IMG/VR virus record: IMGVR_UViG_3300032236_001850
Location: 370,510 to 434,509 of that record
Direction: 5' to 3' (one strand)
DNA: 64,000 nt
The notes beneath the pieces are model-generated. The model saw only the letters and a program-made list of their open reading frames with translations. It did no database searches and had not been told where the DNA came from. Shown here in pieces: positions 4,521 through 25,498 of this stretch. The translations under genes and the position numbers were made by a program. The first letter of the stretch is position 1. Each line of letters starts with the position of its first letter.

Positions 4521-4521
4521 G

Positions 4522-5253: not shown

Positions 5254-5257
5254 GTTG

Positions 5258-5265: not shown

Positions 5266-5283
5266 CATAAAATAAATCAAGAT

Positions 5284-5664: not shown

Positions 5665-5665
5665 G

Positions 5666-6091: not shown

Positions 6092-6093
6092 TT

Positions 6094-8619: not shown

Positions 8620-10026
8620 ATGATTATTGATATAGAGAATAAGGGAAGCTACTTAAATGTATCGCACTTCGGCCCTGAAGGAGAACTTGCATTCCTACAC
8701 GTCCCAATACCTGAGGAGGAAAGATTTAATTGGGAAAAATGCAATCCTGGAGATCCTAAGAGGGATAAGGAATGGACAAACTGGAAGGGAGAACCAGTAA
8801 AGAAGGTAAAGACCGAAAGATATGACAAATATCGTATGGCTCAAATCCTAATGGAAGCTCCGGATGAATTAACAAAGCCCTTATGGGAATATCAGGAACC
8901 TAAGAAATACTTCGTCGATATAGAGGTTGAGATAACCGAAGATAAAGCTGCATCACTGGATACTGAGAATGCTAGAAATAGGGTTCTTTCAATAGGTATT
9001 GGAACCGATAAAAGAAAAATATTAATTCTTGGACTCGACCCATTAACACCGGAACAGCAGGGAAGTATTTTTAATAAACTAAACTCATATTTCGAAAAAA
9101 CCGGAGACGAGTGGAGTTTCAAATATAAACAATTTGAAACCGAGTATGATATGATGTACACCTTTTTCCGTGAGCTTGGTCCTAAAATGTCAACCATTAC
9201 TGGATGGAACTGGCTTGGGTATGACTGGCCATATTTGGTTAATAGAGCTAAAAGACTTGGAATAGATCCAAAAATAATATCTCCTGGAAAAACCCTTATT
9301 GGCAAGGGACAATTACCACAGCACCTATTGATGTTTGACTACTTGGAGATTTATAAAAAATGGGACAGAGTTATTAAAATCAAGGAAAGTAATAGACTTG
9401 ATTATGTTGCAGAAAAAGCTGTTGGTTTCAAGAAGATAACTTATGATGGAACACTGAGAGATTTATACCAATCAAATTTTGAAGATTTTATCTACTATAA
9501 TGCTGTCGATTGTGCTCTAGTTCACTATATAGATCAGAAGCTTAAAACCATGCAAACTTTCTTTAAGATTGCGATGATATCTGGTGTTGAAATAAATAGA
9601 TGTCTTTCTCCTGTTTGGTCCACTGAGGTTCTTATGATGAAGAAATTTCTGGAAAGAAAACAGGTTCTTACCGCTGAGAAAAAAGAGGAGGTTCATGTTA
9701 AATTTGCTGGTGGATACGTTAAAGATCCTATAAAGGGATTGCATGGTTGGGTAGCATGTTACGATTTTGCTTCGCTATATCCTAATACAATGGTACAGTG
9801 GGGAATTTCACCTGAATCTTATAAAGGAAAAAATCTATTGAATCCTAAGGAAGCTTGGATAAAATGTGCTTCCGGTGCATACTTTGGAAATGATGACGAT
9901 AACCCAATATTAAAAATAATAATCAAGGATTTATATTCCAGAAGAAGAAAAACTAAGGATAAAATGCTTGAATTAGAGCTAGAAATTGATGCTTTGAAAA
10001 AAGAATTGGCCAAGGCGAAAAATTAA
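8620..10026 (+). CDS. Family-B DNA polymerase, N-terminal half (3'-5' exonuclease plus motif A)
   Basis: ExoI DIEV, ExoII GWNWLGYD, ExoIII YNAVD, motif A YDFASLYP; stops in the fingers helix. Confidence 0.9.
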   Translation: MIIDIENKGSYLNVSHFGPEGELAFLHVPIPEEERFNWEKCNPGDPKRDKEWTNWKGEPVKKVKTERYDKYRMAQILMEAPDELTKPLWEYQEPKKYFVDIEVEITEDKAASLDTENARNRVLSIGIGTDKRKILILGLDPLTPEQQGSIFNKLNSYFEKTGDEWSFKYKQFETEYDMMYTFFRELGPKMSTITGWNWLGYDWPYLVNRAKRLGIDPKIISPGKTLIGKGQLPQHLLMFDYLEIYKKWDRVIKIKESNRLDYVAEKAVGFKKITYDGTLRDLYQSNFEDFIYYNAVDCALVHYIDQKLKTMQTFFKIAMISGVEINRCLSPVWSTEVLMMKKFLERKQVLTAEKKEEVHVKFAGGYVKDPIKGLHGWVACYDFASLYPNTMVQWGISPESYKGKNLLNPKEAWIKCASGAYFGNDDDNPILKIIIKDLYSRRRKTKDKMLELELEIDALKKELAKAKN

Positions 10027-10028
10027 CG

Positions 10029-10094
10029 TATTAGTCTCGGTAGATCTGAATCTGGGTTGATATATAAAATCCAAGAGCGATCTAGAGTCTAGTA
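10029..10094 (+). other. Long imperfect hairpin with GATATATAA in the loop
   Basis: TATTAG/CTAGTA, CTC/GAG, TAGATC/GATCTA, TCT/AGA, GGGTT/AATCC arms. Confidence 0.6.
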
Positions 10095-10127
10095 ATAAGA
10101 TTATGAAATTAACAAAAATTAAATAAA

Positions 10128-10595
10128 ATGGCTAACATTGACAACAGTTGCTCAGAGTTAAATATCGAGGATCTTTATTCAAAAAGTAGTGACACTCTTG
10201 GGGACATACTGAATTTACAAGCAGACACGCAAAGGAATGTTTATAATTATAACTTCGATGAAATGAATCTTCGAGAAGTTATGGAATTTTGGCATATGAA
10301 CACTCATGCAATGATAGATGAGATTCATGAAGCAACAGATGCTCTTGGCGGAATTAAGGATGGCAACGGTAATGCGATTTGGAAAAAATGGAAACAAGCT
10401 TATGATACCTACGGGTCTAAAAAATTCTCAGACCTATCACCAAGCGATCAACTTGAATGTAAATTCGAGGTTATAGATATGCTTCATTTTTTCATGAATT
10501 ATGCAATATCTATAGGTATGACACCATCTGAAATGTACAATATGTACATGAGTAAAAACCTGGAAAACAGGAGAAGACAACAAAATAATTATTAA
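10128..10595 (+). CDS. Dimeric all-alpha dUTPase/dCTPase (T4 gp56/MazG-like)
   Basis: [27 protein letters not shown]. Confidence 0.85.
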
Positions 10596-10609
10596 AAAAA
10601 ATTAAAAAA

Positions 10610-11593
10610 ATGGAAGGAAGATACTCTTTACCAGAACCCATTCTGACTAATAACCCAGGCAGGTTCGTTATTTTTCCTATTGAGCACCATGATATATGGA
10701 AGCGATATAAGGAACAAGAAGCATGTATATGGACGGCGGAAGAAATAGATCTTTCTGCTGATCTTAACGATTGGAGAAATAAACTAAATGACGATGAGAG
10801 ATATTTCATCAAAAACGTCTTAGCTTTTTTTGCTGCATCGGATGGAATAGTTAATGAAAATTTAGCTGAGAATTTTGTGGCTGAAGTTCAATATGCAGAA
10901 GCAAAGTTTTTCTATGGCTTCCAAATCATGATGGAGAATATACACTCTGAAACATATTCATTGCTTATAGACACCTACATACAAGATCCAGCGGAAAAGG
11001 ATAGACTTTTTAATGCTATAGAAACAATACCAGCTGTTAAGAAAAAAGCTGAGTGGGCATTAAATTGGATATCAAATGCTAGCTTCCAAGAGAGACTTAT
11101 TGCTTTTGCTGCTGTGGAAGGTATATTTTTTAGTGGATCCTTTTGTTCCATTTTCTGGATGAAAAAAAGAGGTCTTTTACCTGGTTTATGTTTCTCTAAT
11201 GAGATGATTTCTAGAGATGAAGGTATGCACTGTGATTTTGCGGTACTGTTACACAACGAACATTTAGCTAACAAAGTTTCTGAAGAAAGAATAAAGGAAA
11301 TAATCACAAGCGCATTAGATATAGAAAAAGAATTTATAACTGAATCTTTACCTGTTAGATTGATTGGTATGAATCAGGATCTTATGAAACAATATCTTGA
11401 ATTTGTTGCTGATAGATTACTTGTTGATCTTGGTTGTTCAAAAGTTTATAATTCGACATGTCCATTCGATTTCATGGAGAATATAGCTTTACAAGGTAAA
11501 ACTAATTTCTTTGAAAAAAGAACTGGTGATTACCAAAAATCTGGAATAATGAATAAGAATTCAGATACGTTCGAGATGAATGATGACTTTTAA
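10610..11593 (+). CDS. nrdB: Ribonucleotide reductase class Ia beta subunit
   Basis: [35 protein letters not shown]. Confidence 0.95.
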
Positions 11594-11615
11594 AAATAAA
11601 AAATTAACTTAAAAT

Positions 11616-14108
11616 ATGTTTGTAACCAAAAGAGATGGCTCGAGAGAAGCTGTTAGATTTGAAAAAATATCGAATAGAATAAGAAAAATGACGTATGGTT
11701 TAAATACTGATTACGTCGATGCAATGGAAGTGGCTCAGAAGGTTATTGCTGGAATTTACGATGGTATATCAACACAGGAGCTTGATAACCTTACAGCAGA
11801 AACTGCAGCTTCCCTTATTCCTAGACATCCTGACTATTCCATATTGGCTTCCAGAATAGCGGTATCGAGACTACATAAAACAACTAAGAAAAAATTCTCA
11901 GAAACAATACAGGATCTTTATGATTACATAGATCCAGAAACAAATCAACCTGCTGGTTTGATCAACGATCTTACTTATGAGGTTGTGATGAAAAATAAAC
12001 AGAAACTTGACGGAGCAATTATACATGAAAGGGATTTCGATTTTGAATATTTTGGCTTTAGAACACTTGAGAAAAGTTATCTGTTAAAAACCAATGGACA
12101 AGTTTGCGAATCACCGCAGCACATGTACATGCGTGTAGCCGCGGGAATATGGGGTGATGATATAAAGAGTGTTATTAAAACTTACGAGCTTTTATCAACA
12201 CATATGATGACTCATGCTACTCCTACGTTATTTAATGCAGGTACCAAGAAACCTCAGTTATCGTCATGTTTCTTATTAATGATGTCAGATGATTCTATTC
12301 CTGGTATTTATAAAACCCTTTCTGACGTTGCAATCATATCACAAAATGCTGGTGGTATCGGTCTTGCTATACATAACGTGAGAGGAACTGGTTCCTATAT
12401 TAGAGGAACTAACGGTACTTCCAATGGAATAGTTCCAATGCTTAAGGTGTTTAATGAAACTGCTAGATATGTTGATCAGGGCGGAGGTAAAAGAAAGGGA
12501 TCTTTTGCCATCTATGTTGAGCCTTGGCATTCAGATATTGAAGATTTTATAGAGCTTAGAAAAAATCACGGTAAGGAAGAATTCAGAGCTAGAGATCTTT
12601 TCTTAGCTTTATGGACACCTGATTTATTCATGAAAAGAGTTGAGGAGGATAAAGATTGGAGCTTATTTTCTCCTTCTGAAGTTCCTGGTCTTTGGGAGTT
12701 ATATGGCGATGAATTTGAAGCTGCCTATGAGGCTGCAGAAGCTGCAGGTAAAGCTAAAAAAGTAATTAAGGCTAGAGAGCTTTGGTCTAGAATATTGGAT
12801 GCACAAATTGAAAATGGAACACCTTATATGCTTTATAAGGATGCTGCAAATAAAAAATCAAATCAAAAGAATCTTGGTACAATAAAGAGTTCAAATTTAT
12901 GTACCGAGATTATGGAATATACTGATAAGGATGAACAAGCAGTTTGTAATCTTGCTTCTATACCAGTTAATAAATTTCTTAAATCCACTGACAATAGAAC
13001 AGCAAAAATAACCAGAGGAAGATGTGAAGTTGACCATCAAGCTCTTTATGATGTTTCATATCAAACAACTCTAAATCTTAATAAGGTAATAGATGTTAAT
13101 TATTATCCCACAGCAGAAACTAAAAAATCAAATTTAAGACACAGACCTATAGGTATAGGTATTCAAGGACTTGCTGATTTATTTGCAATTATAGGTATTC
13201 CTTTCGCTTCTCCTGAAGCTAAAAGAATAAACGAAGAAGTATTTGAAACCATATATTTTGCTGCAATGAGTGCTTCTGTTGCACTTGCTAAGAAGGATGG
13301 AGCTTATGAAACTTTCCAAGGTTCACCTCTATCTAATGGTGAATTTCAATTTAATTTATGGGGATTCAATGACGAACAGTTGTCGGGAAGATGGGATTGG
13401 TCTAAACTTAGAAAGGATGTAATGAAAAATGGAGCTAGAAATTCATTATTACTAGCACCTATGCCAACAGCTTCAACAGCTCAGATTATGGGTAACAATG
13501 AAGCTTTCGAACCATTCACCTCGAATATATACACTAGAAGAACTCTAAGTGGTGAATTTATAGTCATAAACAAACACCTTGTGAAGGATCTTATTTCTCT
13601 AGGTTTATGGAGTGAAGATATGAAAAATCTTATAGTTCTAAATAAAGGATCTGTTCAGAATATAGAACAAATTCCTGAAAGTTTGCGTGAGGTTTATAGA
13701 ACAGTTTGGGAAATAAAGCAGAAAGATCTTATAGATATGTCAGCAGGAAGAGGTAAATTTATATGTCAATCACAGTCTCTCAATTTATTTATAGAAAATG
13801 TGAATTCAGCTAAATTGACTTCTGCGCATTTTTATTCATGGAAAGCAGGACTTAAAACAGGAATGTACTATCTAAGAACTAAAGCAGCAGTTGATGCTCA
13901 AGCAGGTCTTGGTATAGATATGGAGAAGGCTAAGAAAGCTATGAAGGAATCAAAAGAAATTAAGATAACTCCAGAACCAGTAAACACACCAAATGTTTTG
14001 GTTAACGGTATGACTAGCGAAGAACTTAGTAAAGCTGCTGAAGATGTACTTTCCGGTGTTGCTTGCAGTCTTGACGATCCGGAAGGATGCGAAATGTGCG
14101 GCTCCTAA
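11616..14108 (+). CDS. nrdA: Ribonucleotide reductase class Ia alpha subunit with ATP cone
   Basis: VTKRDG ATP cone, SSCF, SNLCTE, C-terminal CEMCGS. Confidence 0.95.
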   Translation: MFVTKRDGSREAVRFEKISNRIRKMTYGLNTDYVDAMEVAQKVIAGIYDGISTQELDNLTAETAASLIPRHPDYSILASRIAVSRLHKTTKKKFSETIQDLYDYIDPETNQPAGLINDLTYEVVMKNKQKLDGAIIHERDFDFEYFGFRTLEKSYLLKTNGQVCESPQHMYMRVAAGIWGDDIKSVIKTYELLSTHMMTHATPTLFNAGTKKPQLSSCFLLMMSDDSIPGIYKTLSDVAIISQNAGGIGLAIHNVRGTGSYIRGTNGTSNGIVPMLKVFNETARYVDQGGGKRKGSFAIYVEPWHSDIEDFIELRKNHGKEEFRARDLFLALWTPDLFMKRVEEDKDWSLFSPSEVPGLWELYGDEFEAAYEAAEAAGKAKKVIKARELWSRILDAQIENGTPYMLYKDAANKKSNQKNLGTIKSSNLCTEIMEYTDKDEQAVCNLASIPVNKFLKSTDNRTAKITRGRCEVDHQALYDVSYQTTLNLNKVIDVNYYPTAETKKSNLRHRPIGIGIQGLADLFAIIGIPFASPEAKRINEEVFETIYFAAMSASVALAKKDGAYETFQGSPLSNGEFQFNLWGFNDEQLSGRWDWSKLRKDVMKNGARNSLLLAPMPTASTAQIMGNNEAFEPFTSNIYTRRTLSGEFIVINKHLVKDLISLGLWSEDMKNLIVLNKGSVQNIEQIPESLREVYRTVWEIKQKDLIDMSAGRGKFICQSQSLNLFIENVNSAKLTSAHFYSWKAGLKTGMYYLRTKAAVDAQAGLGIDMEKAKKAMKESKEIKITPEPVNTPNVLVNGMTSEELSKAAEDVLSGVACSLDDPEGCEMCGS

Positions 14109-14122
14109 AAAAATAAATTGTA

Positions 14123-14791
14123 ATGGAAAACAACAAATGGTTTAATGACGATGTCATAAAAAAATTCGATGAATTTTTAAACGAGAGAGAATTACCAGAT
14201 TCTCAGGGGGATGTACTAGTTATGCTAGGAGCTCCTGGCTCCGGTAAAGGAACACTTTCAAAACAGCTGAATGAAAAATTTGGGATAAATCATATATCAA
14301 CTGGTGATCTAATAAGAAAATCCGATGATCCTGAATTGAAGAAAATAGTTGAGTCAGGAAAGTTCATATCCGATGAAATGATGCTTAAAATGCTAAGAAA
14401 AGAGCTAAAAAAGCTTGATCTTAATAAAGGTATAATTTTTGATGGATATCCAAGAACAATAAAACAAGCGAGAAAGCTTGATTCGTTATTGGGTAAATTG
14501 GGTCTTGGTTTAAATCATGCTATATTTATGGATCTTCCGGAGGATAAGGCTAAGGAGAGAATAAGAAATAGAGCTAAGAAGGAGGGAAGAAAGGATGATG
14601 CAAGTGATGAGGTTATAGATAAAAGATTTGCCGAATATCACGAGAAAACTTTTCCTCTTGTTGATTTTTACAAGAAAAGCAGAAAATTAATAAAAATTGA
14701 TGCTGATCTTGGTATGGAAGGAGTTCTTAAATCCATAGTTAAAAAGTTGGGTCTTAAAAAACCTAAAAAGAATAGAGATGAAAAAATCTAG
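14123..14791 (+). CDS. adk: Adenylate kinase with CTS-like N-terminal extension
   Basis: GAPGSGKGT, HISTGDLIR, DGYPRT, RKDD; leader IKKFDEFLNE. Confidence 0.9.
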   Translation: MENNKWFNDDVIKKFDEFLNERELPDSQGDVLVMLGAPGSGKGTLSKQLNEKFGINHISTGDLIRKSDDPELKKIVESGKFISDEMMLKMLRKELKKLDLNKGIIFDGYPRTIKQARKLDSLLGKLGLGLNHAIFMDLPEDKAKERIRNRAKKEGRKDDASDEVIDKRFAEYHEKTFPLVDFYKKSRKLIKIDADLGMEGVLKSIVKKLGLKKPKKNRDEKI

Positions 14792-15431
14792 TGAAGATTT
14801 TGTAAAATCGATAAAGGAAAAAGTAAATCAACAAAAGAATATAGAAATAATCCAGAGAAATCTACTACATGATTCTCTGGATTATTTTTCTTCTGTGATT
14901 CTACAGGATGGTGAAATAGAGATAAGAAGTTGCAAGAAATTTGATTCTGGTGAAATGAATTGTTTTCTTAATCTCTACAGCGAACATGATTCTATACCAG
15001 ATCAGATAGATTCAATATTACATAAAAACAATCTTGAATTCAAAAATTTAAGACTGGATGAAAGAAAATTGATATATTGTGTTAATTTTGGAAATAATAT
15101 ATTGTCCTCAGCACATAACGACAACTGGATATTTTTAGAATTTTATTTAAAAGGTAAACATATATTCGAATGTAAAATTTCCTCTAAATTGGGATCGATT
15201 GATTATTCTCTATATGATAGTAAATATTTTAATATAAAATTCTGGGTGTTTGACGGTGAATCATTTAATAAATATGAAATTCCTCTAATAAATATAAACA
15301 GAAATAAAAGAGGAATAACAAGATCACTCGATGAAAAGTATTCTGCTTCTATAAAATTTGATCAAATAGGTGAGGTTGAATCCATAAAAGTTACTAAAAA
15401 AAGGGAGCAAAACCAAACAACTAAGCTATAA
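14778..15431 (+). CDS. Hypothetical protein
   Basis: 217-aa ORF in operon. Confidence 0.5.
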   Translation: MKKSSEDFVKSIKEKVNQQKNIEIIQRNLLHDSLDYFSSVILQDGEIEIRSCKKFDSGEMNCFLNLYSEHDSIPDQIDSILHKNNLEFKNLRLDERKLIYCVNFGNNILSSAHNDNWIFLEFYLKGKHIFECKISSKLGSIDYSLYDSKYFNIKFWVFDGESFNKYEIPLININRNKRGITRSLDEKYSASIKFDQIGEVESIKVTKKREQNQTTKL

Positions 15432-15447
15432 TATTAAAAAGCTTTAA

Positions 15448-16716
15448 ATGAGTACTAAAAATAAAAAGAAACAGAAAAAAGTAGCATCACCTATTAGTAT
15501 CCCTAGGCCAATCCCCAATAACGTTCAAGTTATAGATCTTTGTTTGGTTATGATTGTTAAAGACGAGGAAGACACCATGGAAAGATGTCTTAGAGCAGTT
15601 GCTCCTTATATTAAATATTGGGTGATTGTTGATACAGGTTCCAAAGATAAAACCATAGAGGTAATAAATAAAACGATGGAATCTTTGGGTATTCCTGGAG
15701 AACTTCACGAAAGACCTTGGGTAAACTTTGAAGTTAATAGAACGGAAAGTTTAAATCTAGCTAAAGGAAAATGTGATTATAGATGGATAATAGATGCGGA
15801 TGATACATTCATACCTGAAAATCCAAACATTAATCCATTTGCTGGTCTTGATAAAGGCCCTGATTGTTACCAGGTATTATATAAATTGAATAATCTTCAA
15901 TACCACAGAGCCCAAATAGTTAAATCTGACCAAAATTGGGTTTATAAAGGTGTACTGCACGAGTATCTTCATTTGGAAGATAATAGAGGTGAAATATTTC
16001 AGGGACAGATACCAAATGCTTTTGTTATAGCTGATATCTCGCCTCTTAAAAGAGCTGCTTCACTTGAGGAAAAATATGCAAATGATGCAAAAATACTTGA
16101 AAAAGCACTTATTGATGAGCCTAATAATGAGAGATATATGTTTTATCTAGCTCAGAGTTATAGAGATTCTGATCAGCTTGAAAAATCTATAGAGGCATAC
16201 GGCAAAAGAATTGATATGGGTGGATGGGAAGAGGAGGTTTATTATTCCATGTATATGATTGCTAAAATGAGAGAAAAGATGGGTGCGCCGATAGAGGAAG
16301 TTGCTAATCTTTATTCCAGAGCATGGGAATATAGACCTTCTAGATTAGAAGCAGTTTTCCACACTATGAGAAAATATCGGGAACAGAAAAGATTTCTGAT
16401 TGCATTTGCATATGGTGATGTCGCTATAAAAACAAGAGGAACCCAGGATATACTTTTTATCGAGGCTGAGATATGGCAATGGAGATTGCTCGATGAATAC
16501 TCTTTAGCTGCACATTATATCGGAAATCCAGAAATAGCATTGGAAAAAACAAATGCCATTATAACTGCTCCGTTTTTCAAAACCCTTCCTATGGATGAGC
16601 AAAATAGATTAAATAAAAACATGGATTTTTATAGAAAAGCTGCACAGGAAAAAGCTAAACAGGTACAACTTGCAAACATGAATGCTAAACCACAACCTAA
16701 GAATAGAAAAAAGTAA
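15448..16716 (+). CDS. GT2 glycosyltransferase with TPR repeats
   Basis: MIVKDE, VDTGS, DADD, GVLHE; TPR FYLAQSY. Confidence 0.85.
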   Translation: MSTKNKKKQKKVASPISIPRPIPNNVQVIDLCLVMIVKDEEDTMERCLRAVAPYIKYWVIVDTGSKDKTIEVINKTMESLGIPGELHERPWVNFEVNRTESLNLAKGKCDYRWIIDADDTFIPENPNINPFAGLDKGPDCYQVLYKLNNLQYHRAQIVKSDQNWVYKGVLHEYLHLEDNRGEIFQGQIPNAFVIADISPLKRAASLEEKYANDAKILEKALIDEPNNERYMFYLAQSYRDSDQLEKSIEAYGKRIDMGGWEEEVYYSMYMIAKMREKMGAPIEEVANLYSRAWEYRPSRLEAVFHTMRKYREQKRFLIAFAYGDVAIKTRGTQDILFIEAEIWQWRLLDEYSLAAHYIGNPEIALEKTNAIITAPFFKTLPMDEQNRLNKNMDFYRKAAQEKAKQVQLANMNAKPQPKNRKK

Positions 16717-16756
16717 TCTAATTACTGGATATATACTATAAAAATTAGGAAGTAAA

Positions 16757-17290: not shown

Positions 17291-17307
17291 ATAGAAAAAT
17301 ATAAATT

Positions 17308-17338
17308 AAAACCCTCAATTAAACATTGAGGGTTTTTT
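17308..17338 (+). terminator. Rho-independent terminator
   Basis: AAAACCCTCAAT..ATTGAGGGTTTTTT. Confidence 0.8.
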
Positions 17339-17387
17339 ATTGAAATTAATTTTCGAAAAAGCATATAATATTAAACATAAAATTAAA

Positions 17388-19172
17388 ATGGATAACAAAA
17401 AGGTCAATAAAACTATAGAGGTACTTACTGATTTTGAGCATATCATTAAAAGACCAACGATGTATGTTGGATCTGTTAAGAAGAGTGAGGAAACATTACC
17501 CATAATAGGCGACGGCTTCATTAAGGCTGTAAATAAGGAACATTCCATCGGGATGTATAAATTGTTTGATGAAGTGTTTGCAAATTCAGTAGACGAAGCG
17601 AAAAGGATGTCTACGTCAATGAAGACGATCATCGTTGAAGTCGATAGCAAGGAAAATCTTGTTTCCATAACTGACACCGGTGATGGGTTCACTAACGGAT
17701 CAACAATAAACAAAAAGAGTAAGTTAACTAATATAGAGACGGCTGTTTCGATGCTTAGAGCAGGTTCTAATTTTGATAATGACGATATAGCGGAATCTAT
17801 AGTTGGTACAAATGGTATGGGTGTATCTCTAGTTAATGCTTTATCGAATATGTTTGAGATAGAAACAACAAATGCTAATGAAACGTATTTGCAAACCTGG
17901 ACATCTTTTAAATCCAATAAAGCAACAATAACACCGAAGAAGAAGGGCACAAAAACAGGAACGAGAGTTTCTTTTATACCGAATTCATCAGTCTTTGACA
18001 ATTCAAAGTGGGACTATTCAACCATAATATCGTATCTTTGTTTGAAAAAGAGAGTTCTAGAAACTGAGGAAAAAACTGCATCTCTGAAGATCGAGTTTAT
18101 CTGGAATGGTAAGAGTGAAATTATAGAATCTGGACTTAAGCCAGATTGGTCTGCAAAAGCAAATATTGGTGAAATTCTAATCTGGGAAAAAAGACCAGAA
18201 TCCGGAACCTTTTCTTTTGTTAATAGTGCACTTTGTACCGGGATACACCAAAAGATAATACAAGATAAAATAAACATAGAACTGGATGACACACTAGGTC
18301 ATCATTTTTATGATACACTAATTATCCTAAATATGTCACCAAGTATAGTTAGATTTGGTGATCAGAATAAAACTAAATTTGTTTCTAAGAGGGAGGAAGT
18401 TGAACCGACCATAATGAGACACTTCGATTCTGTTCTGAATAAATTCTTTAAAAGTGACGTTTACAAGAAAATTAAAAAATCCGTTGACGATAGGAGAAAG
18501 GAATCTGAATTAAAGAAAATTAGGAAAGAAAAGAAAGGTATTAGAATCAAGAATTCGAATAAGTACTTTCCACCAACAGCAATGAGAGCTGAAAATCTTT
18601 TTATAGTTGAAGGTTTAAGTGCAATGGGATCAATATTACAAAAAAGAGATCCTAAAAAGGATGGTGTTTATGCACTTAAGGGTAAGATAAAAAATGCTAG
18701 AAGTCTTTCAGATTTATCTGACAATAGAGAAATTCTCGAGCTCATGCAGATATTGAATTTAGATCCTGAAGGTCAGAATTTAACCTGCCCATTTGAAAAA
18801 GTTGTTATAGCTACAGACCAGGATCCGGATGGTGCACATATTACTTCACTTCTGATAAATCTTTTCTATACTTGGTTTCCGTGGATGATCAAACAAAACC
18901 GAATACATTTTCTTGATACCCCGTTAGTAACGGTGGGTGATCGTGTTAAAAAATATTATTATTCTCTTGATGAATTTAAAAAGGCAAAAGGAGACAAAAA
19001 TAATGTTAGGTACCTTAAGGGACTTGGTTCACTATCCTTGGAGGATTGGGATCATGTTATGAGTAATAGAAGAGTTACTGTACTTAGAGAAGATCCAGCC
19101 ACCAAAAAACATTTAGAGATGGCATTCGGAAAGTTATCAAGTGAAAGAAAAAAATGGCTAAGCTCCATGTAA
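17388..19172 (+). CDS. Type II topoisomerase ATPase/TOPRIM subunit (T4 gp39+60-like)
   Basis: RPTMYVGS, EVFANSVDE, GTNGMG, EGLSA, DQDPDG, YLKGLGS; start moved to ATG 17388, downstream of the promoter at 17342-17369. Confidence 0.9.
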   Translation: MDNKKVNKTIEVLTDFEHIIKRPTMYVGSVKKSEETLPIIGDGFIKAVNKEHSIGMYKLFDEVFANSVDEAKRMSTSMKTIIVEVDSKENLVSITDTGDGFTNGSTINKKSKLTNIETAVSMLRAGSNFDNDDIAESIVGTNGMGVSLVNALSNMFEIETTNANETYLQTWTSFKSNKATITPKKKGTKTGTRVSFIPNSSVFDNSKWDYSTIISYLCLKKRVLETEEKTASLKIEFIWNGKSEIIESGLKPDWSAKANIGEILIWEKRPESGTFSFVNSALCTGIHQKIIQDKINIELDDTLGHHFYDTLIILNMSPSIVRFGDQNKTKFVSKREEVEPTIMRHFDSVLNKFFKSDVYKKIKKSVDDRRKESELKKIRKEKKGIRIKNSNKYFPPTAMRAENLFIVEGLSAMGSILQKRDPKKDGVYALKGKIKNARSLSDLSDNREILELMQILNLDPEGQNLTCPFEKVVIATDQDPDGAHITSLLINLFYTWFPWMIKQNRIHFLDTPLVTVGDRVKKYYYSLDEFKKAKGDKNNVRYLKGLGSLSLEDWDHVMSNRRVTVLREDPATKKHLEMAFGKLSSERKKWLSSM

Positions 19173-19175
19173 ATA

Positions 19176-19208
19176 TTTTTTTATATCGAATAAATAATTT
19201 ATATTTGC
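19176..19208 (+). promoter_or_regulatory. Bacteroidota-type promoter (T-tract..CG-N11-TATATTTGC)
   Basis: TAnnTTTG -7 consensus 12 nt before ATG. Confidence 0.7.
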
Positions 19209-19220
19209 ATAAAAAATAAC

Positions 19221-20174
19221 ATGGATAGAAAATTAGGTTACTGCTGCATCAACATGACTCTTTCTGAGAGCAAAGAAAAGATCACTACAAACAGAGGAAT
19301 GGTTAAGAAAACATTCACCGAAAAGGGATTGGACTATGTTTCTGATCTTGCTTTGCAAAACGTTAAGGATCTTAGAAAAATACTAGAGTGGAATCATGCT
19401 AATGGTATAGGAATGTATAGAATGTCGAGTGATATGTTCCCATGGTGTTCTGAGTATGAAATATCTGATCTTAAGGACTATTCCGAGATATGCGGAATAC
19501 TTAAAGGCTGCGGAGATTTTGTTAAATCCGTTGAACAGAGAATAACCTTCCATCCCTCACCTTATGGGGTTCTTGCTTCTGAAAGACCCGATGTTGTAGT
19601 GAAAGCAATAAAGGAATTATCACAGCATGGTGAGATAATGGATATGATGGGATTGGATAGATCTGTTTATTACCCGATCAATATTCATGTTAATACAACA
19701 AAGCCAGATAAAGAAACAGCAGCAAACAGATTTTGTGAGAATTTTGAATTGTTACCAGATTCTGTTAAGACAAGGTTGGTTGTAGAGGTAGATGACAAGA
19801 AATCACAATATACCTCTCTTGATTTGCATAGAATGATTTATTCTAAAATTGGAATACCAGTTACTTTCGACTATTTGCATAACGAATGCAATCCACCAGA
19901 GAATATTTGCGAAGAGGCATCGCTTAGAGTTTGTTTATCCACGTGGCCAGAGAACATACCAGCAATTACCCATTACTCGGATTCTAAGAGAATGTTTGAG
20001 GATTCGACAGCTAAAGAGGTTGCTCATTCTGATTGGGTTTGGAGAGGACCCGAAACTTATGACCTTTTATTCGATATAGAATTCGAAATAAAAATGAAAG
20101 AGAAAGCTCTATTGAAATATATGGAGGAAAAAAATAATAAATTATATGAGCGAGAATGTAATACAGGAATTTGA
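19221..20174 (+). CDS. uvsE: UV damage endonuclease
   Basis: LGYCCIN, YRMSSDMFP, FHP, NIH, FDYLH, HYS, AHSD. Confidence 0.9.
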   Translation: MDRKLGYCCINMTLSESKEKITTNRGMVKKTFTEKGLDYVSDLALQNVKDLRKILEWNHANGIGMYRMSSDMFPWCSEYEISDLKDYSEICGILKGCGDFVKSVEQRITFHPSPYGVLASERPDVVVKAIKELSQHGEIMDMMGLDRSVYYPINIHVNTTKPDKETAANRFCENFELLPDSVKTRLVVEVDDKKSQYTSLDLHRMIYSKIGIPVTFDYLHNECNPPENICEEASLRVCLSTWPENIPAITHYSDSKRMFEDSTAKEVAHSDWVWRGPETYDLLFDIEFEIKMKEKALLKYMEEKNNKLYERECNTGI

Positions 20175-20379
20175 GGATTCGTTATCCAATAATATCCAGA
20201 ATCCCGACATAAAATATAGTTTGGATAGAGTTATAGAGGGAGAAGTTAAGTATGGATATTTAACTGAGAAATTCGGAAAGGAAAGGGTTGATGCTCTTGT
20301 TTCCGATTTTCTATTTTTATCTGATTTTGACTTTTTCCTTAAAATAAAAGAAAAATTAGAAAATAATGGGAATGATTAG
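20146..20379 (+). CDS. Hypothetical protein
   Basis: Overlapping ORF in operon. Confidence 0.5.
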   Translation: MSENVIQEFEDSLSNNIQNPDIKYSLDRVIEGEVKYGYLTEKFGKERVDALVSDFLFLSDFDFFLKIKEKLENNGND

Positions 20380-20722
20380 CTTTAATGGTGGATTTGGTGG
20401 ATTTCCAACTCATCCCCAATATGGTATATTAAAAAAACATATTGAAAGATCCATCCAGGATATATTTTTAAACTCATTAAGAGATCGTATGGATGATCTC
20501 GTTTATGTTTTCGATAACACTGAACAGATAGATTCCTTTATAGGAAGGATGCTTAAATATTGGGAGGGAACAGAAAATTATGAAACGTGCATGGAAATAA
20601 AAAATCTTTCCGAACCACTTAAAACTAAATGGAAGGGTAAGGGAGTTCTTGAACCTGGAGAAGCCTCCATAAAAATAAAGGATATTTTTAAATCCACACA
20701 GAATAATGAAGGACCACTATAA
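20366..20722 (+). CDS. Small protein with UVR-like ExxExYExC motif
   Basis: [14 protein letters not shown]. Confidence 0.5.
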
Positions 20723-21749
20723 AACATTAGGATTATCTAAAAATGCAACGGCTGACGAAATAAAGAAAGCTTACAGAAAATTAGCAGTTAAATACCATCC
20801 TGATAAAACTGGTAATGATCCTGTTTTGGAGGGTAAATTCAAGGAGATTAACGAAGCATATGAAATTCTATCTGACCCCAAGAAAAGAGAAAATTACGAT
20901 ACTCCAAATTCTTTCGGAGGAAGTTTTAACTGGGGTGGTAGCAATCAGGGTAATCCTTTCCAGAATGCGGATTTTGGAAATTTCTGGGGTGCTGGTAGAG
21001 GTTCTGCAAATCCATTCGGTAATCAAAGGATTAGAAAGGGAAACAATATAAACGTATATGTCACTGTTTCGTTGGAAGAGATGATGTCTGGAACTAACAA
21101 AAAAGTTAGAGTGAATCGTGCGACACAATGTTTGGATTGTAGTGGTACTGGTGCAGAATTTGGACACACTAATGATTGTGACGAATGTCATGGTTCTGGT
21201 AAGAAGACGAGAACAGTAAATCATGCTTTTGGTGTGATGGAGTCCGTTGAGGATTGTAGAAAATGTACAGGAAGCGGAAAGGTATCTGAGCATAAATGTT
21301 CCTTTTGTAGCGGGAGTGGTACAATAAGAAAAGACGAGGAGATGGAAATAAATATACCTAAGGGATCCATATCTGGGGTTTCATATATGGTTATGAGTAA
21401 GGGTGATTGGTTAAAATCCCCATGTAATCCCGGAGATCTTATAGTTAATATTAATGAATTTTTACATCCAGTTTATACGAGGGATGGAAATAATCTTATC
21501 CATGATGCACAGATCTCTTTCAAGGACGCCTGTCTTGGTACCGAGATAGAAATTAGCAATTTAAAGGGCTCAGCATATAGAATCAAAATACCCGCGGGTA
21601 CTTCGTCCGGCAAAATCTTCAGATTACCAGGAAAGGGTATACCTGAATTTAATGGTTTTGGTAGTGGTGATATACTAGTTAAAGCACATATAAAAATACC
21701 TACCGATTTAAACGAAGAGCAAATAAATGCTCTTGAATACTTTTCATAA
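20706..21749 (+). CDS. dnaJ: DnaJ chaperone
   Basis: J domain with HPD, G/F region, four CxxCxGxG repeats. Confidence 0.95.
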
Positions 21750-22090
21750 TGAATATACTTTTTATACTTTTCGTTGGTTGGTGTATAACATCAACCACAG
21801 TGAATGCTGATGTATTAGATCCAATAAGAAATTATCTATTAGTTAAATCACCAAAATTATCTAAGCTTATGACATGCGTTAGATGTCTTGGTTTTTGGGT
21901 TGGTGCTCTTCTTTTTGGTGTTATAAATTATCTTGGTAATCTTGATTCTTTTTTTGGCTTACCCATTTATTTTAATTATTTCATTTTTCCTTTTGTTCAA
22001 AGTTCAAGCGGAGTTATTATGGAATCTGTCCTTGTATTTTTACATAGCAGAAACACTGTTGTTATTAATAACAATGACAATCCCAAATAA
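21749..22090 (+). CDS. DUF1360-like membrane protein
   Basis: LMTCVRCLGFWVG, hydrophobic segments. Confidence 0.55.
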   Translation: MNILFILFVGWCITSTTVNADVLDPIRNYLLVKSPKLSKLMTCVRCLGFWVGALLFGVINYLGNLDSFFGLPIYFNYFIFPFVQSSSGVIMESVLVFLHSRNTVVINNNDNPK

Positions 22091-22146
22091 TTTCAAAAAG
22101 TTAAGAAACAATATCAAAAATGAACATAAAATAATAAAATCTTTAT

Positions 22147-23550
22147 ATGAACAATCATTTAAACATCACGGATCAAATAAACACTCAGTATAGATCCTAT
22201 GCTCTTTATGTTTTGCAAAGTAGAGGTATACCAAATTTTTATGATTCATTAACCCCAGTTCAGAGATTAATACTTGAGAATTCACCAAGCAGATTTAGTA
22301 AAACTGTTGGTCTTGTTGGTGAAGTAATTAAAACCGGATTATATCATCATGGTGATTCATCCCTGGCCGGAGCTATTTCTAAATTGGCTAGACCTTTTGG
22401 TTGTTCCTATGGAATATTGGAGGGTGATGGTTTTTTCGGTTCACCTGTAAATCCAAGTCCGTCCGCACCGAGATATACTGCTGTTAAGATAAATCAAAAA
22501 ATCAGAGATATTATAACCAAGAATTCTGATCTAAACGAAAAGAATGAGGAAGGTGGACATGATTGGGTGCACGTTGAGGTTCCTATCGGTTTATTAACAC
22601 ATATTGTTGGTATAGCAGTTGGATATAGAAGTAATATACTTCCTAGAAAATTCGAGGACATAGTTGAATACCTACAAGGCTCTACAAAGCTTTTAAAGCC
22701 CCATTTTAAGGACTTTAGCGGAAAGATAAGCAAATATATGAATGAGGAGAATTCGTGGCTGCTAGAGAGCGGTTTTGAGGTTGATTCACATAGAAAGATA
22801 ATAAGAATATTTGATCTTCCGCCAGTTATGAGATATGACAGTTTCATTAACAAACTGGAATTAAAATTGGAGAAATCTGGATATGATTACAGAATAGAAA
22901 ATAAGTCTCAAAGTAAGTGTGAATTGGCAGTCCAAATAAAGGGTAACGTTACATCGGAAACATTCACAGCTATAGCTGATCATATTTCCAAGCTTACTAA
23001 AATTATAGTTAAGGAGGATGTTATATTTGTTAGGGATGGTAATGTAATGGAATTTGGTTCGGTTAAGGAGTATCTAGATCACTTTAAACAACATCTGGAG
23101 TTAGTTAAGCTTAAAAGGATAATTAGAGATAATGAGGATAATATTAGAGAACTTAAATTTCTAGAAGCTAAGCTTCTTTTTCTTAATTTTATGATTGAAA
23201 AGAAAAGAAAAAATGATGAGATAATTAAATTTCTATCAGATTTTGAATCTTGGATATCCTCTAGACTACAAAGAATAGAAATAGTAAAGTTATCTCCTGA
23301 ATACATTAAGGAAACTAAAGAAGCTATAGACTCTATAAAAAAGGAGATTGAAAAAATTAAAAAATCAATATCAGCACAAGAAAAGATCTATAAGAAGGTA
23401 TCTGCCGATGTGGAAAAACTAGGTAACGGAGCTTCTAAAAAAATACAAAATAGTTTATTTGAAACATATCATGATGATGGAATAGAGGTATTCCAAGTTA
23501 ATGAGGAGGAATTTGAAGAAACAACAGAGGAAGAAAACGAAGAATTTTAA
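22147..23550 (+). CDS. Type II topoisomerase breakage-reunion subunit (T4 gp52-like)
   Basis: RGIPNFYDSLTPVQR, YHHGDSS, SAPRY (catalytic Tyr). Confidence 0.9.
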   Translation: MNNHLNITDQINTQYRSYALYVLQSRGIPNFYDSLTPVQRLILENSPSRFSKTVGLVGEVIKTGLYHHGDSSLAGAISKLARPFGCSYGILEGDGFFGSPVNPSPSAPRYTAVKINQKIRDIITKNSDLNEKNEEGGHDWVHVEVPIGLLTHIVGIAVGYRSNILPRKFEDIVEYLQGSTKLLKPHFKDFSGKISKYMNEENSWLLESGFEVDSHRKIIRIFDLPPVMRYDSFINKLELKLEKSGYDYRIENKSQSKCELAVQIKGNVTSETFTAIADHISKLTKIIVKEDVIFVRDGNVMEFGSVKEYLDHFKQHLELVKLKRIIRDNEDNIRELKFLEAKLLFLNFMIEKKRKNDEIIKFLSDFESWISSRLQRIEIVKLSPEYIKETKEAIDSIKKEIEKIKKSISAQEKIYKKVSADVEKLGNGASKKIQNSLFETYHDDGIEVFQVNEEEFEETTEEENEEF

Positions 23551-23571
23551 TAATTAAATATTTTAATAAAA

Positions 23572-24339
23572 ATGAGGTTAAGAATAACAAGTATACCTAA
23601 TTTGATTGTCTTTTTGAAAAGACTAAAAGCAGTAGAAAAAAGTGTTATATTGGAAATAAACAAAGATAATATTTTCAGTAAAGTTCACACACCAGATAAG
23701 GCAACAATGAAATATTCGAGTCTTGATATGGACAAAGTTTTTGAAACAAATTTCGATTGGACTTCAATTAAGCATGATCGTGTTAAAATTGGACTTAATG
23801 ATGTTACCAGATTAATGGAAGCATTTAAACACTTCAGACCTGAAGAGGAAGTTAATTTGGAACTCGACATTGCAACAGTTGACGATTCTAGTGTTTCCAC
23901 TGAATTAAGACTTGTTTCTCCATCGTTGACTATTAGATTAAGATGTTCTGATCTTACTATGCTTTCCTATGTTGAGGATAAGATATTATCAATGGTTCAT
24001 TCTAAGGATGATTGTCTTGTTAATTTCAAAATGTATCAATCAGATTTCACGACAATCAGTTCACTTTGTGGAATGGACAGCGATAGCCAGGAGATACTTT
24101 GTTTTGAAATTGATGATAAAACGGTTCATGCAATAGGTAACTCGTTCAATTATAAATTGAATATAGGCTCTAGTGAAATTATATTAGATGATAGCGACAA
24201 AGAAACTGCTAACATTTACAAAAGTCAGCTTGGGTATATGGAATCTGAATTTTGTGATGTTTTTGTGCATGATAATAGATTAGTTTTATTTTCGGAACAA
24301 TCTGCAACTTCCATAGCAATAGGTTTAGTTGAGAAATAA
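23572..24339 (+). CDS. Probable sliding clamp (gp45/PCNA-like)
   Basis: 255 aa alpha/beta pattern, next to polymerase; position-based inference. Confidence 0.5.
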   Translation: MRLRITSIPNLIVFLKRLKAVEKSVILEINKDNIFSKVHTPDKATMKYSSLDMDKVFETNFDWTSIKHDRVKIGLNDVTRLMEAFKHFRPEEEVNLELDIATVDDSSVSTELRLVSPSLTIRLRCSDLTMLSYVEDKILSMVHSKDDCLVNFKMYQSDFTTISSLCGMDSDSQEILCFEIDDKTVHAIGNSFNYKLNIGSSEIILDDSDKETANIYKSQLGYMESEFCDVFVHDNRLVLFSEQSATSIAIGLVEK

Positions 24340-24352
24340 TAATTGATAGAAA

Positions 24353-25498
24353 ATGACTCCAGAAGAAATTAAAGAGATTGAAGAAAAAATAGAGAGGCTC
24401 ACCGCTCTTAAAAATGAGTATAAGAACGAGGAGCAAGCAGTAAAGTTAACAATGAACTCCATCTATGGAGCGATTGGTAACAACTATTTCGTTTGCTTCA
24501 ATCCTGATGTTGCCGAGGCGGTAACCCTCCAGGGTCAGGATCTTATCAAATACTCTGAAAAAATATTACATAAGTATTTCCATGAACATTGGCATCTTGA
24601 CACGGAGCTGCACGAAAAACTTGGATTGACTCAGGTTAAAAGAGTTACAAATCCATTAGTCGTTTATGGAGATACTGATTCTAATTATGTTACATTTCAG
24701 GAGGTGGTGGATTCCTGTGATTATCAGGGGGATGCTAAGGATCTAATTATTAAGATAAATCAATATAGACTTAATGATTATCTTAAAAAATGTTTTGATA
24801 TCTACTCCAAAAAATGGAACACCGAGAACTATCAGGATTTTGAGCTTGAAACACTTGCTATAAATGCTATATTTCTCGGTAAGAAAAAATATGTTGCAAA
24901 TCTTGTTTATGATTCGGGATTGCACATGGAACCTCTTTCAACATTAAAAACCACTGGTGTTGAGATGATTAAGGGAGGTACACCGCCTTTCGTTAGAGAG
25001 AAACTTATCTACTTAACCAAATTGATCTTTAGTAAAGGTAGATCTTTCGATATACGTGAGTTTGTGAAGGAACTTAAATCAATTAAGAAGGAGTTCAAGT
25101 TACAGGAACCTCAGAATATATCGGCTTCCATAAATGTGAATAGCTATGATAAGATACTGAACGATACAACAGGATTTGAAGTTGCTAAGGCTTGTCCTAT
25201 ACATGTTAGAGCATCAGGTTATCACAACTATCTTTTGAACAATTCACCATACAAGACCAAGTACTCGCTCATCCGTGCGGGAGATAAAGTTAATTTATAT
25301 TTTGTAAAAACTAAAAATATAAATGATAGTAACATATTTGCATATCCACAGGGAACATTTCCGTACGAATTTGCTCCGCCTTTGGATTACGATGAACAAT
25401 TCACAAAAACCATTCTTGATCCCATAAACAGATTCATCGAGGTGATGGGATACAACCAAATAAGTCCCAATCTATTTATGGTTAACGCTCTTTTTTAA
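24353..25498 (+). CDS. Family-B DNA polymerase, C-terminal half (motifs B, C, thumb)
   Basis: KLTMNSIYG, YGDTDS, KKKY, CPIHVR. Confidence 0.9.
   Translation: MTPEEIKEIEEKIERLTALKNEYKNEEQAVKLTMNSIYGAIGNNYFVCFNPDVAEAVTLQGQDLIKYSEKILHKYFHEHWHLDTELHEKLGLTQVKRVTNPLVVYGDTDSNYVTFQEVVDSCDYQGDAKDLIIKINQYRLNDYLKKCFDIYSKKWNTENYQDFELETLAINAIFLGKKKYVANLVYDSGLHMEPLSTLKTTGVEMIKGGTPPFVREKLIYLTKLIFSKGRSFDIREFVKELKSIKKEFKLQEPQNISASINVNSYDKILNDTTGFEVAKACPIHVRASGYHNYLLNNSPYKTKYSLIRAGDKVNLYFVKTKNINDSNIFAYPQGTFPYEFAPPLDYDEQFTKTILDPINRFIEVMGYNQISPNLFMVNALF

Follow-up and report, generated by a model that had tools for sequence, protein, structure and literature searches.

This locus raises the question of how a family-B DNA polymerase (PolB) could serve replication when it is encoded by two genes whose halves lie 14.3 kb apart. 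The window analyzed, a 64,000-nucleotide stretch of the IMG/VR record IMGVR_UViG_3300032236_001850, is part of a complete phage genome of 434,509 bp (direct terminal repeats, CheckV 100%). With a probability of roughly 85%, the two genes, here called polB-N and polB-C, encode the subunits of one heterodimeric T4 gp43-like replicative PolB, joined non-covalently and without splicing. The palm would be divided, its motif-A half coming from subunit N and its motif-C half from subunit C. Subunit N would also bring the N-terminal domain, the exonuclease for proofreading and, in the fingers, helix 1, whose Arg binds the triphosphate; finger helix 2, carrying motif B, would belong to subunit C, together with the thumb and the C-terminal tail. 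The polypeptide would thus be broken in the fingertip loop, with the subunits made separately and then folding together non-covalently; the palm sheet would be common to both chains, the finger helices would pair as a normal antiparallel hairpin, and neither RNA nor protein splicing would take part.

A preliminary description of this DNA, made from the letters alone, had placed the exonuclease and motif A in an ORF at 8620-10026 and motifs B and C in another at 24353-25498. Both ORFs were found at exactly these coordinates, on the + strand, and the window uses the standard genetic code. The polymerase features are:

8620..10026, + strand: polB-N, 468 aa; N-terminal domain, Exo I-III, palm motif A, finger helix 1 with the conserved R442
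9910..10023, + strand: finger helix 1 of polB-N (residues ~431-468), ending in the fingertip; the first heptad helix of the preliminary description
24353..25498, + strand: polB-C, 381 aa; finger helix 2 with motif B, motif C, KKKY, thumb, C-terminal tail
24353..24550, + strand: residues 1-66 of polB-C, with finger helix 2 and motif B; the second heptad helix of the preliminary description

Profile searches bear out both the split and the assignment of motifs. Against Pfam, polB-N matches DNA_pol_B_exo1 (E 4e-07) and positions 16-140 of the 453 in DNA_pol_B (E 2.9e-10), and polB-C matches positions 146-352 of the latter (E 3.6e-17). Against the PHROG full-length polymerase phrog_262 (856 positions), polB-N covers positions 63-498 (E 3.6e-70) and polB-C positions 492-840 (E 9.9e-63); E-values of 1e-60 to 1e-70 exclude chance. 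Since the matches fall in complementary ranges of the profiles, the two ORFs tile one PolB, with neither gap nor surplus at the junction. Dedicated PHROGs families also exist for each polymerase half.

The residues agree with the profiles. In polB-N, the exonuclease motifs Exo I (D100/E102), Exo II (N197/D202) and Exo III (Y293/D297) are invariant across 24 aligned N-halves, and motif A (YDFASLYP, 381-388, with D382) and the finger Arg R442 are invariant in the alignments of relatives. Equally invariant among aligned relatives of polB-C are K31, N35, S36, Y38 and G39 of motif B (31-39), D107, T108, D109 and S110 of motif C (105-110), and the KKKY at 177-180. Judged by sequence, the pair thus has the marks of a family-B (gp43-like) proofreading polymerase: the exonuclease motifs (DxE, Nx3FD-like and Yx3D), motifs A (DxxSLYPS), B (Kx3NSxYG) and C (YGDTDS), and KKxY. 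With an 898-residue solved gp43 chain as reference, polB-N aligns up to residue 502 and polB-C from residue 540, so that the cut falls at the fingertip and separates the two finger helices, with R442 (helix 1) on the N side and K31 of motif B on the C side.

Prediction of a complex of the two halves gave a score of 0.83 in three runs, compared with 0.00 for the best control, although the score may partly mirror the model's memory of single-chain PolB structures. In calibration, the mark for this score was reached by 51 of 78 solved complexes and by 2 of 108 mismatched pairs. The runs show 360-380 contacts, at least 97% of which agree between runs, with a partner pLDDT of 84. Read as a model result, the score indicates that together the halves can make up a whole PolB fold; it is not proof of binding in the cell. 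Taken with the precedents described below, the prediction suggests that the halves would assemble physically, and the assembled pair would be expected to have enzyme activity.

A different arrangement had been proposed in the preliminary description, in which the halves are held mainly by an antiparallel coiled coil of their terminal heptad helices and separate operons allow their independent regulation. The model agrees with it insofar as the halves reassemble and the helical terminal segments (polB-N 431-467, polB-C 1-66) touch, with a heptad-like i/i+3/i+4 contact pattern, but this is native hairpin packing, and the C-terminal helix of polB-N aligns with finger helix 1 of solved gp43 chains. 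The 'heptad helices' are thus the ordinary two antiparallel finger helices of a PolB. The most confident and most extensive contacts lie in the palm, where one sheet is built from both chains (polB-N 362-399, including motif A, with polB-C 103-116, containing motif C, and 155-178). In the predicted complex the coiled coil contributes to the interface but is not what assembles the halves.

The operon part of the proposal depends on the 14,326 bp between the halves, which hold 15 ORFs, all on the + strand (functions by Pfam/PHROG for the MazG-like, RNR, adenylate kinase and glycosyltransferase genes):

10128-10595, + strand: MazG-like NTP pyrophosphohydrolase
10610-11593, + strand: RNR small subunit
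11616-14108, + strand: RNR large subunit
14123-14791, + strand: adenylate kinase
14778-15431, + strand: ORF, unknown
15448-16716, + strand: GT2 glycosyltransferase
16757-17290, + strand: ORF, unknown
17310..17337, + strand: terminator-like hairpin (12-bp stem then T-run; consensus match only)
17340-19172, + strand: topoisomerase II ATPase/Toprim subunit
19221-20174, + strand: UvdE
between the UvdE and DnaJ genes, + strand: small ORFs
20706-21749, + strand: DnaJ
21749-22090, + strand: membrane ORF
22147-23550, + strand: topoisomerase II A subunit
23572..24339, + strand: PCNA-type sliding clamp, 255 aa, ending 13 bp before polB-C

Separate operons find support in the terminator-like hairpin between the genes, and among the largest relatives, where the halves lie 100-280 kb apart on opposite strands, co-transcription is clearly not required. 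Here, however, polB-N heads a co-directional block of ~19 genes for replication and nucleotide metabolism, and polB-C lies in the same block. Independent regulation is unsupported, as an obligate 1:1 enzyme has no obvious gain from unequal expression. A sigma-70 promoter scan was uninformative (58 matches, 79 in shuffles); no Shine-Dalgarno sequences are present in the leaders, so the host may use a type of promoter outside the reach of a sigma-70 scan. The sequencing runs matched by the sequence are all DNA metagenomes (pond, aquatic), with no RNA runs among them; a single one contains it in full and may be its source.

The ORF directly upstream of polB-C gave no match in a PHROGs search, and its single-sequence AF2 model had a pLDDT of 34. 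With a 61-sequence alignment, the AF2 model reached pLDDT 94 and pTM 0.89 and returned at least 500 Foldseek matches at E <= 0.001; the best among those listed are all PCNA-type clamps (best E 5.6e-13, TM 0.66-0.69). A profile of the ORF searched against PDB sequences found archaeal PCNA (E 6e-4). By its modeled structure, the ORF is a PCNA-type sliding clamp with a two-domain fold of ~250 aa. The gene is single-copy in the genome and lies directly upstream of polB-C in 58 distant loci, so that a clamp-then-polB-C pair, new to this analysis, is conserved across the family. PolB-C is probably co-expressed with the adjacent upstream clamp gene. By analogy with gp43, the C-terminal tail of polB-C, which is hydrophobic and has LF as its last residues, should dock on the clamp.

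Both halves occur on the same strand, N upstream, in 35 independent viral contigs (13 close, 22 distant), with gaps of 1.0-23.9 kb. The minimal arrangement is polB-N, clamp, polB-C inside 3.5 kb; other lineages carry 4 to 24 kb of genes between polB-N and the clamp. What is kept is the clamp-then-polB-C adjacency, not separation as such, and a gap ranging from 1 to 24 kb looks like neutral gene accretion. Set beside the shared palm sheet and the single block, this makes assembly by coiled coil with separately regulated operons unlikely.

The two proteins could also have separate jobs, for instance with polB-N acting alone as a proofreading or repair exonuclease and polB-C working with another partner. 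The exonuclease domain does lie wholly within polB-N, and the N-fragment of Pfu PolB is soluble alone (PMC3061061). The active site, however, requires the motif A Asp of the N-half together with the motif C Asp residues of the C-half, all of which are invariant, and the genome holds no alternative partner for either half; we regard such a division of labor as improbable.

Joining into a single chain after expression, by a split intein, RNA trans-splicing or a very long intron, is less probable still. Inteins do occur in this polymerase among relatives: two close relatives have an intein domain within the C-half, and LR756500 and Lak-A2 have split inteins in the same gene, but at another site (motif C). 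At the junction studied here, too little sequence is left over for an intein, as only ~3-5 residues per end fall outside the polymerase profile; the phrog_262 match reaches within ~3 residues of the polB-N end and begins at about residue 5 of polB-C. No intein blocks fit at either junction end, and no Cys/Ser/Thr +1 nucleophile context is present there. An Rfam gathering search of the whole window returned 0 matches and hence no intron family, in keeping with the lack of intein or intron signatures noted earlier, and no homing endonuclease was found at the junction or between the halves. Each half has its own start and stop, kept across all relatives, and the same stop site is used in 25/25 close N-half relatives, among the closest of which stand-alone N-halves are the majority. 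As far as the sequence allows, these are two independently translated ORFs without a splicing element; it points to co-expression and to no join at the RNA level.

As a refutation, the preliminary description had named an intact polB elsewhere, with these ORFs as decayed copies. A search of the whole genome with Pfam PF00136 and phrog_262 matched only the two halves and no intact gene. PolA and PolIII-alpha likewise had no match in the genome, although the Pfam model might miss a minimal split PolIII of the kind known from some jumbo phages (PMC7824862). On this evidence, the split PolB is the sole recognizable DNA polymerase of this 434-kb phage. Both halves are under strong purifying selection (dN/dS 0.027-0.041 for polB-N and 0.021-0.024 for polB-C, with dS ~1 or saturated). 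A reading in which the ORFs are the remains of a once intact polB that decayed or was broken up in assembly, with another polymerase replicating the genome, is the least probable and is refuted as far as sequence data go: no supporting point was found, no other polymerase matched in the complete genome, dN/dS is 0.02-0.04 in both halves with every catalytic residue kept, and independent assemblies, 13 of them close and 22 distant, repeat the arrangement. The split is genuine and conserved, and strong selection maintains it.

The non-covalent heterodimer has close parallels. As the preliminary description had pointed out, some T4-like phages encode a replicative family-B polymerase cut between the finger helices, as two polypeptides (gp43A/gp43B) and with no splicing, from genes 2 bp to 3 kb apart (PMC3061061, PMC2988022); the Aeromonas and Acinetobacter phages 25, 31, 44RR, 65 and 133 are so described by Petrov et al. 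(2006, 2010), as cited in PMC3061061 and PMC2988022. For phage 25, gp43A and gp43B purify together and have activity (PMC2988022). Between the gp43A and gp43B genes there is an untranslated spacer or a homing endonuclease gene, and the lineages are otherwise unsplit T4-like phages. In the window, by contrast, the spacing of 14.3 kb exceeds those 3 kb and is filled by 15 ordinary genes of replication and nucleotide metabolism, with no mobile element, and most members of a large separate clade have the split. The window thus carries a dispersed version of the fingertip split already known in T4-like phages.

Within the same family, gp105/gp110 of the cultured Sphingomonas jumbo phage PAU (29% identity to polB-N) has the same split site, with N upstream and the two genes co-directional; the gene immediately before the C-half encodes a clamp homologue, gp109 (profile search E 1.7e-20; BLASTP of the clamp ORF against gp109 was not significant). 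The PAU halves are separated by only 2.4 kb and four genes. The nearest named relatives, at 30-38% identity, are the huge phages LR756500-4 and LR745206 and the Lak megaphages, which share the fingertip split; the N-halves of LR756500 and Lak-A2 end at the same fingertip site as polB-N. The distance between their halves ranges from 10 kb in LR756500 to 100-280 kb, and most pairs lie on opposite strands. The C-halves of LR756500 and Lak-A2 (pieces of the latter translated with TAG = Gln, table 15) are cut a second time by the motif C split intein, giving a three-piece gene; in LR756500 a homing endonuclease gene accompanies this intein. The parts of such an intein, an N-intein closing one piece and a C-intein that ends in HN ahead of a Ser/Cys/Thr nucleophile in the next, are absent at the window junction. 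Among papers readable without subscription, we found none on the split in Lak, PAU or the huge phages.

Other split polymerases are cut elsewhere. DNAP-N (gp82) and DNAP-C (gp50) of PhiKZ, likewise a jumbo-phage B-family polymerase from two distant genes, form a stable, interdigitated and active 1:1 heterodimer by cryoEM and work with a clamp-related factor (PMC13648687). The PhiKZ cut, however, lies in a large palm insertion, the subunits have 638 and 731 aa, and there is no true sliding clamp (PMC13648687), whereas the window has a fingertip cut, subunits of 468 and 381 aa and no palm insertion. The archaeon Methanothermobacter thermautotrophicus makes one active PolB from two genes 85 kb apart (Kelman et al. 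1999, as cited in PMC3061061), cut, as far as that account goes, in the palm ~83 residues past the fingertip position. An engineered Pfu PolB cut near the fingertip, an artificial construct expressed from a single bicistronic gene, remains fully active, and fragments produced separately can be combined to restore activity (PMC3061061). Combined with a point mutation, the Pfu split gives wider tolerance of gamma-phosphate-modified nucleotides (PMC3061061); by analogy, an open fingertip might alter nucleotide selectivity, and natural fingertip-open polymerases offer a possible screening set for altered nucleotide tolerance.

How the split arose can be addressed in part from trees. Split and unsplit states change 17 times on the tree, which has no root, and a single clade of unsplit forms is rejected (p-AU 0.0002). 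In unsplit relatives the clamp gene lies upstream of the whole polB (directly in L237, by 1.7 kb in L239), so each interconversion needs a rearrangement and not just a stop codon, and for re-fusion that rearrangement would have to span the clamp gene. On a midpoint-rooted FastTree, a history that allows no fusions takes 51 independent fissions, which seems implausible; in the absence of a root, the trees fit fission as well as fusion. Tentatively, and with somewhat less than even odds, polB-N ... clamp, polB-C with its fingertip split may have been the ancestral layout of the replicative polymerase, and may be the dominant one, throughout a very large radiation of big phages that are mostly uncultured, in which case the split would not be a sporadic accident. 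At least one sister lineage (L240) was split by a homing endonuclease gene instead.

These observations mark the fingertip as a place where a break can last: strong selection has maintained the cut through deep divergence, and it can persist even when the two halves have become fully unlinked. With its conserved clamp-then-polB-C pair and its frequent switches between split and unsplit forms, the family offers a tractable system for how essential enzymes become, and stay, multi-subunit. There are also practical consequences, since annotation pipelines and marker-gene phylogenies take PolB as one gene, whereas in this clade, a group abundant in aquatic metagenomes and with the Lak-type megaphages among its members, it comes in two pieces, or three with an intein, that may sit hundreds of kilobases apart. 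Pieces left unpaired lead to wrong completeness checks, PolB trees and replisome reconstructions. For PAU, record JQ362498.1 annotates gp110 alone as a polymerase, and RefSeq NC_019521.1 labels gene 105 as DNA polymerase too.

The source record, 434,509 bp long, has direct terminal repeats and a CheckV completeness estimate of 100%, and thus represents the complete genome of a huge phage; the window covers its bases 370,510-434,509 and has a GC content of ~0.34 along its whole length. Both ORFs that the preliminary description had taken for the two parts of one family-B DNA polymerase (PolB) were found where it had placed them, with a predicted sliding clamp gene just 5' of the second:

8620-10026 (+), N-half (polB-N), 468 aa
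23572-24339 (+), predicted PCNA-type sliding clamp, 255 aa
24353-25498 (+), C-half (polB-C), 381 aa

Against Pfam, the N-half matches DNA_pol_B_exo1 and the first 140 positions of DNA_pol_B, and the C-half matches DNA_pol_B positions 146-352. On phrog_262, the PHROG model of the full-length phage polymerase (856 positions), the N-half occupies positions 63-498 (E 3.6e-70) and the C-half 492-840 (E 9.9e-63). In addition, there are end-to-end matches to two PHROG families that consist of half-length proteins only: the N-half to phrog_2062 (502 positions) and the C-half to phrog_1918 (382 positions). The full set of catalytic residues is kept and, based on the alignment, is invariant in relatives.

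Catalytic and conserved residues, in the numbering of each half
Exo I: D100, E102 (N-half)
Exo II: N197, D202 (N-half)
Exo III: Y293, D297 (N-half)
Motif A: D382 (N-half)
Finger helix 1: R442 (N-half)
Motif B: K31, N35, S36, Y38, G39 (C-half)
Motif C: D107, T108, D109, S110 (C-half)
KKKY: 177-180 (C-half)

On a solved gp43 chain of 898 residues, the N-half match ends at residue 502 and the C-half match begins at residue 540, and chains of RB69 length give the same match pattern for both halves (we take the PDB entries aligned to be T4 and RB69 gp43). The cut therefore lies in the fingertip loop, between two long antiparallel helices. In the unsplit relative P0018 (877 aa, 43% identical) the uncut form is a helix, a loop of ~20 residues and a second helix. 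Either end of the window's halves extends past the polymerase profile by no more than a handful of residues, which leaves no space for parts of an intein, and a search for RNA families (Rfam) found none in the whole window.

The split polB is neither an artefact nor a wrecked gene. The complete genome contains exactly two PolB matches, the N-half and the C-half, and none to PolA or PolIII-alpha; the intact polB that would have made the halves decayed copies was thus sought genome-wide and not found. All 25 close N-halves in IMG/VR (70-96% identity) stop at one position, and C-halves at ≥74% identity form >120 clusters (90% identity), nearly all of ~381 aa. Compared with relatives at 95-97% identity, the N-half has a dN/dS of 0.027-0.028 and the C-half one of 0.021-0.024 (dS ~1-1.5); against locus L013 (84% identity) the N-half gives 0.041. 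The remaining, more distant relatives show saturation at synonymous sites, with proteins that are still 70-86% identical. ORFs, profile matches, relatives and dN/dS together bear out the initial observation of a polymerase split into two genes.

Both halves are present on 35 independent viral contigs, with N upstream of C on the same strand in every case. Distances in these contigs and in named genomes range widely. LR756500 and Lak-A2, the two read in detail, have an N-half that ends at the same fingertip position as that of the window.

Distance between N-half and C-half in relatives
~1.0 kb: 1 contig
3.8-4.7 kb: 14 contigs
6.9, 7.2, 10.9, 12.8 and 13.9 kb: 1 contig each
14.3-17.6 kb: 12 contigs, all closest relatives among them
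21.5 and 23.9 kb: 1 contig each
PAU (cultured phage), gp105 and gp110: 2.4 kb
LR756500: 10.3 kb
LR745206: 101 kb, opposite strands
LR756502: 132 kb, opposite strands
LR756504: 281 kb, opposite strands
LR756501: ≥116 kb, opposite strands
Lak-A2: 221 kb, opposite strands

The gap in the window is 14,326 bp long and holds 15 ORFs, all on the + strand. They encode a MazG-like pyrophosphohydrolase, RNR small and large subunits, adenylate kinase, a GT2 glycosyltransferase, a T4-style two-gene topoisomerase II, UvdE, DnaJ and several unknowns; homing endonucleases, inteins and transposases are absent. The topoisomerase II ATPase/Toprim (17340-19172, +) and A subunit (22147-23550, +) genes, encoded separately in the manner of T4, are parted by UvdE, DnaJ and small ORFs in the window and are adjacent in the unsplit relative L237. 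Within the gap block, the + strand ORFs 20146-20379, 20366-20722, 20706-21749 and 21749-22090 have stop/start overlaps of 1-29 nt, which suggests that they may be translationally coupled.

The last gap gene (23572-24339) ends 13 bp 5' of the C-half and, based on structure and profile comparisons, is predicted to encode a PCNA-type sliding clamp. Its AF2 model (61-sequence alignment) has a pLDDT of 94 and a pTM of 0.89, the top Foldseek matches are all PCNA (E 5.6e-13, TM 0.66-0.69), and its profile matches archaeal PCNA sequences (E 6e-4). The ORF is not recognized by PHROGs, and Pfam gives only a sub-threshold match to Hus1. It is single-copy in the genome. A homologue occupies the position directly 5' of the C-half in almost every close relative, in 58 of ~80 distant loci and in PAU (gp109); in LR756500 one small ORF intervenes. 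In IMGVR_UViG_3300007759_000037 the clamp is the sole gene between the halves (polB-N, 208 bp, clamp, 16 bp, polB-C), and in the unsplit P0018 it is directly 5' of the whole polB, after two topoisomerase genes, as in the neighborhood of the window. The position of the clamp next to polB-C, or next to the entire polB where that gene is unsplit, is a conserved trait of the family. The varying N-to-C gap in relatives looks like gene accretion between the N-half and the clamp.

The proposal that separate operons allow independent regulation of the halves is unsupported: a divergent intergenic region of 69 bp precedes the N-half, which is the first gene of a co-directional block that contains both halves and extends past the C-half. 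One good terminator-like candidate, a hairpin followed by a T-run, occurs in the block (17310-17337), and a sigma-70 promoter scan gave no informative signal. A search of sequencing runs for the sequence turned up no RNA run that contains it. Intergenic leaders between 8551 and 25811 are A-rich before start codons and are without Shine-Dalgarno sequences; these leaders and the relationship to Lak phages (Prevotella) suggest a Bacteroidota-like host.

Complex prediction for the two halves scored 0.83-0.84 in three runs vs 0.00 for the best control, with 360-380 contacts, ≥97% run-to-run agreement and a partner pLDDT of 84; in calibration, 51 of 78 solved complexes and 2 of 108 mismatched pairs attained this mark. 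Since single-chain PolB structures are familiar to such models, the score means that the halves complete a PolB fold, not that they bind in the cell. Strong experimental precedent for reassembly comes, by analogy, from other split PolBs: gp43A/B of phage 25 were co-purified and active (PMC2988022), a fingertip cut leaves Pfu polymerase with its full activity, and the enzyme can also be rebuilt from its separate fragments (PMC3061061), and PhiKZ PolB, which is split differently, forms a stable 1:1 complex (PMC13648687). Prediction and precedent thus support the suggestion that the halves would reassemble. The coiled coil proposed to join them holds in part. In the model, N-half residues 431-467 touch C-half residues 1-66 with 3/4 spacing as a finger hairpin, but the emphasis on this contact was overstated: contacts with the lowest expected error are those of N-half 375-381 (the strand into motif A) with C-half 112-116 and 167-172, in the palm sheet, to which both chains contribute.

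With the N-half as query, 1.84 billion representative proteins yielded 4,848 matches at E ≤ 0.001 and 222 at E ≤ 1e-30. Among the best 150 representatives, 122 are 430-580 aa long, and those with ends inspected stop in finger helix 1, while 18 are 750-980 aa long; the full-length relatives checked are genuine single ORFs in table 11. Full-length forms are scattered over N-part trees, with 17 state changes, of which well-supported FastTree branches force at least 14; an IQ-TREE quick tree (56 rows) also has 17, and a single clade of full-length forms is rejected by the AU test (delta lnL 1692, p 0.0002). Tips with a known layout of N-half, then clamp directly before C-half, delimit a part of the tree that takes in 205 of the 217 tips, and 17 of the 18 full-length forms fall inside it. 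P0091 is split and is the sister of P0090, which is unsplit; the halves of P0091 are adjacent, with a 524-aa gene between them that is 38% identical to the LR756500 homing endonuclease (E 3e-82). This gene and the scatter of full-length forms mean that fission or re-joining at the fingertip has happened repeatedly and by more than one route.

Genes of this endonuclease family separate the adjacent halves in locus L240 (2843-4417) and directly follow the N-half in Lak-A2 (L073, 2997-4010), with the C-half 221 kb away. Such positions hint that endonuclease invasion of fingertip-coding DNA may be one origin of the split.

The C-half of LR756500 (L005, LR756500.1 246000-266000, minus strand, 5414-6184, 3718-5421 and 2784-3725) is cut again inside motif C by a split intein, as is that of Lak-A2 (L074, 1414-2235 and 2591-3565). 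The site in both is after DTD and before Ser, with Ser at intein position 1 and Ser at +1, and the intein halves of LR756500 flank the gene of a free-standing homing endonuclease of 567 aa (phrog_3339, E 7.6e-131), an arrangement known as a 'fractured gene'. With the fingertip cut, the polymerase in these two genomes is therefore made from three genes. P0220 and P0279, close relatives of the window C-half, carry an Intein_splicing domain.

The molecular solution is already known from T4-related phages, which share the fingertip cut, the two polypeptides and the absence of splicing, and the arrangement in this clade is a variant of it. In T4-related phages, however, the halves are adjacent with a spacer or an endonuclease between them, which is not the case for the window genes, and the latter belong to a different, much larger clade. 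In that clade a split polymerase is the norm, with the clamp gene placed between N-half and C-half, and linkage can vanish altogether. Half-length polymerase families were already present in PHROGs; within the portion of the literature covered, we found no description of a fingertip split in PAU, Lak or huge phages.

Four further ORFs lie near the polymerase genes:

6323-6823 (+), 166 aa, tandem Cys-rich CNCNESC-like repeats followed by a Gly/Ala/Asn-rich low-complexity tail
6893-7282 (+), short HhH-GPD glycosylase-like ORF, 5' of the N-half
25812-27287 (+), RimK-like ATP-grasp ligase (E 1.2e-32), just 3' of the C-half
27527-28006 (-), 159 aa, nearly all Asp/Glu/Tyr repeats, extremely acidic
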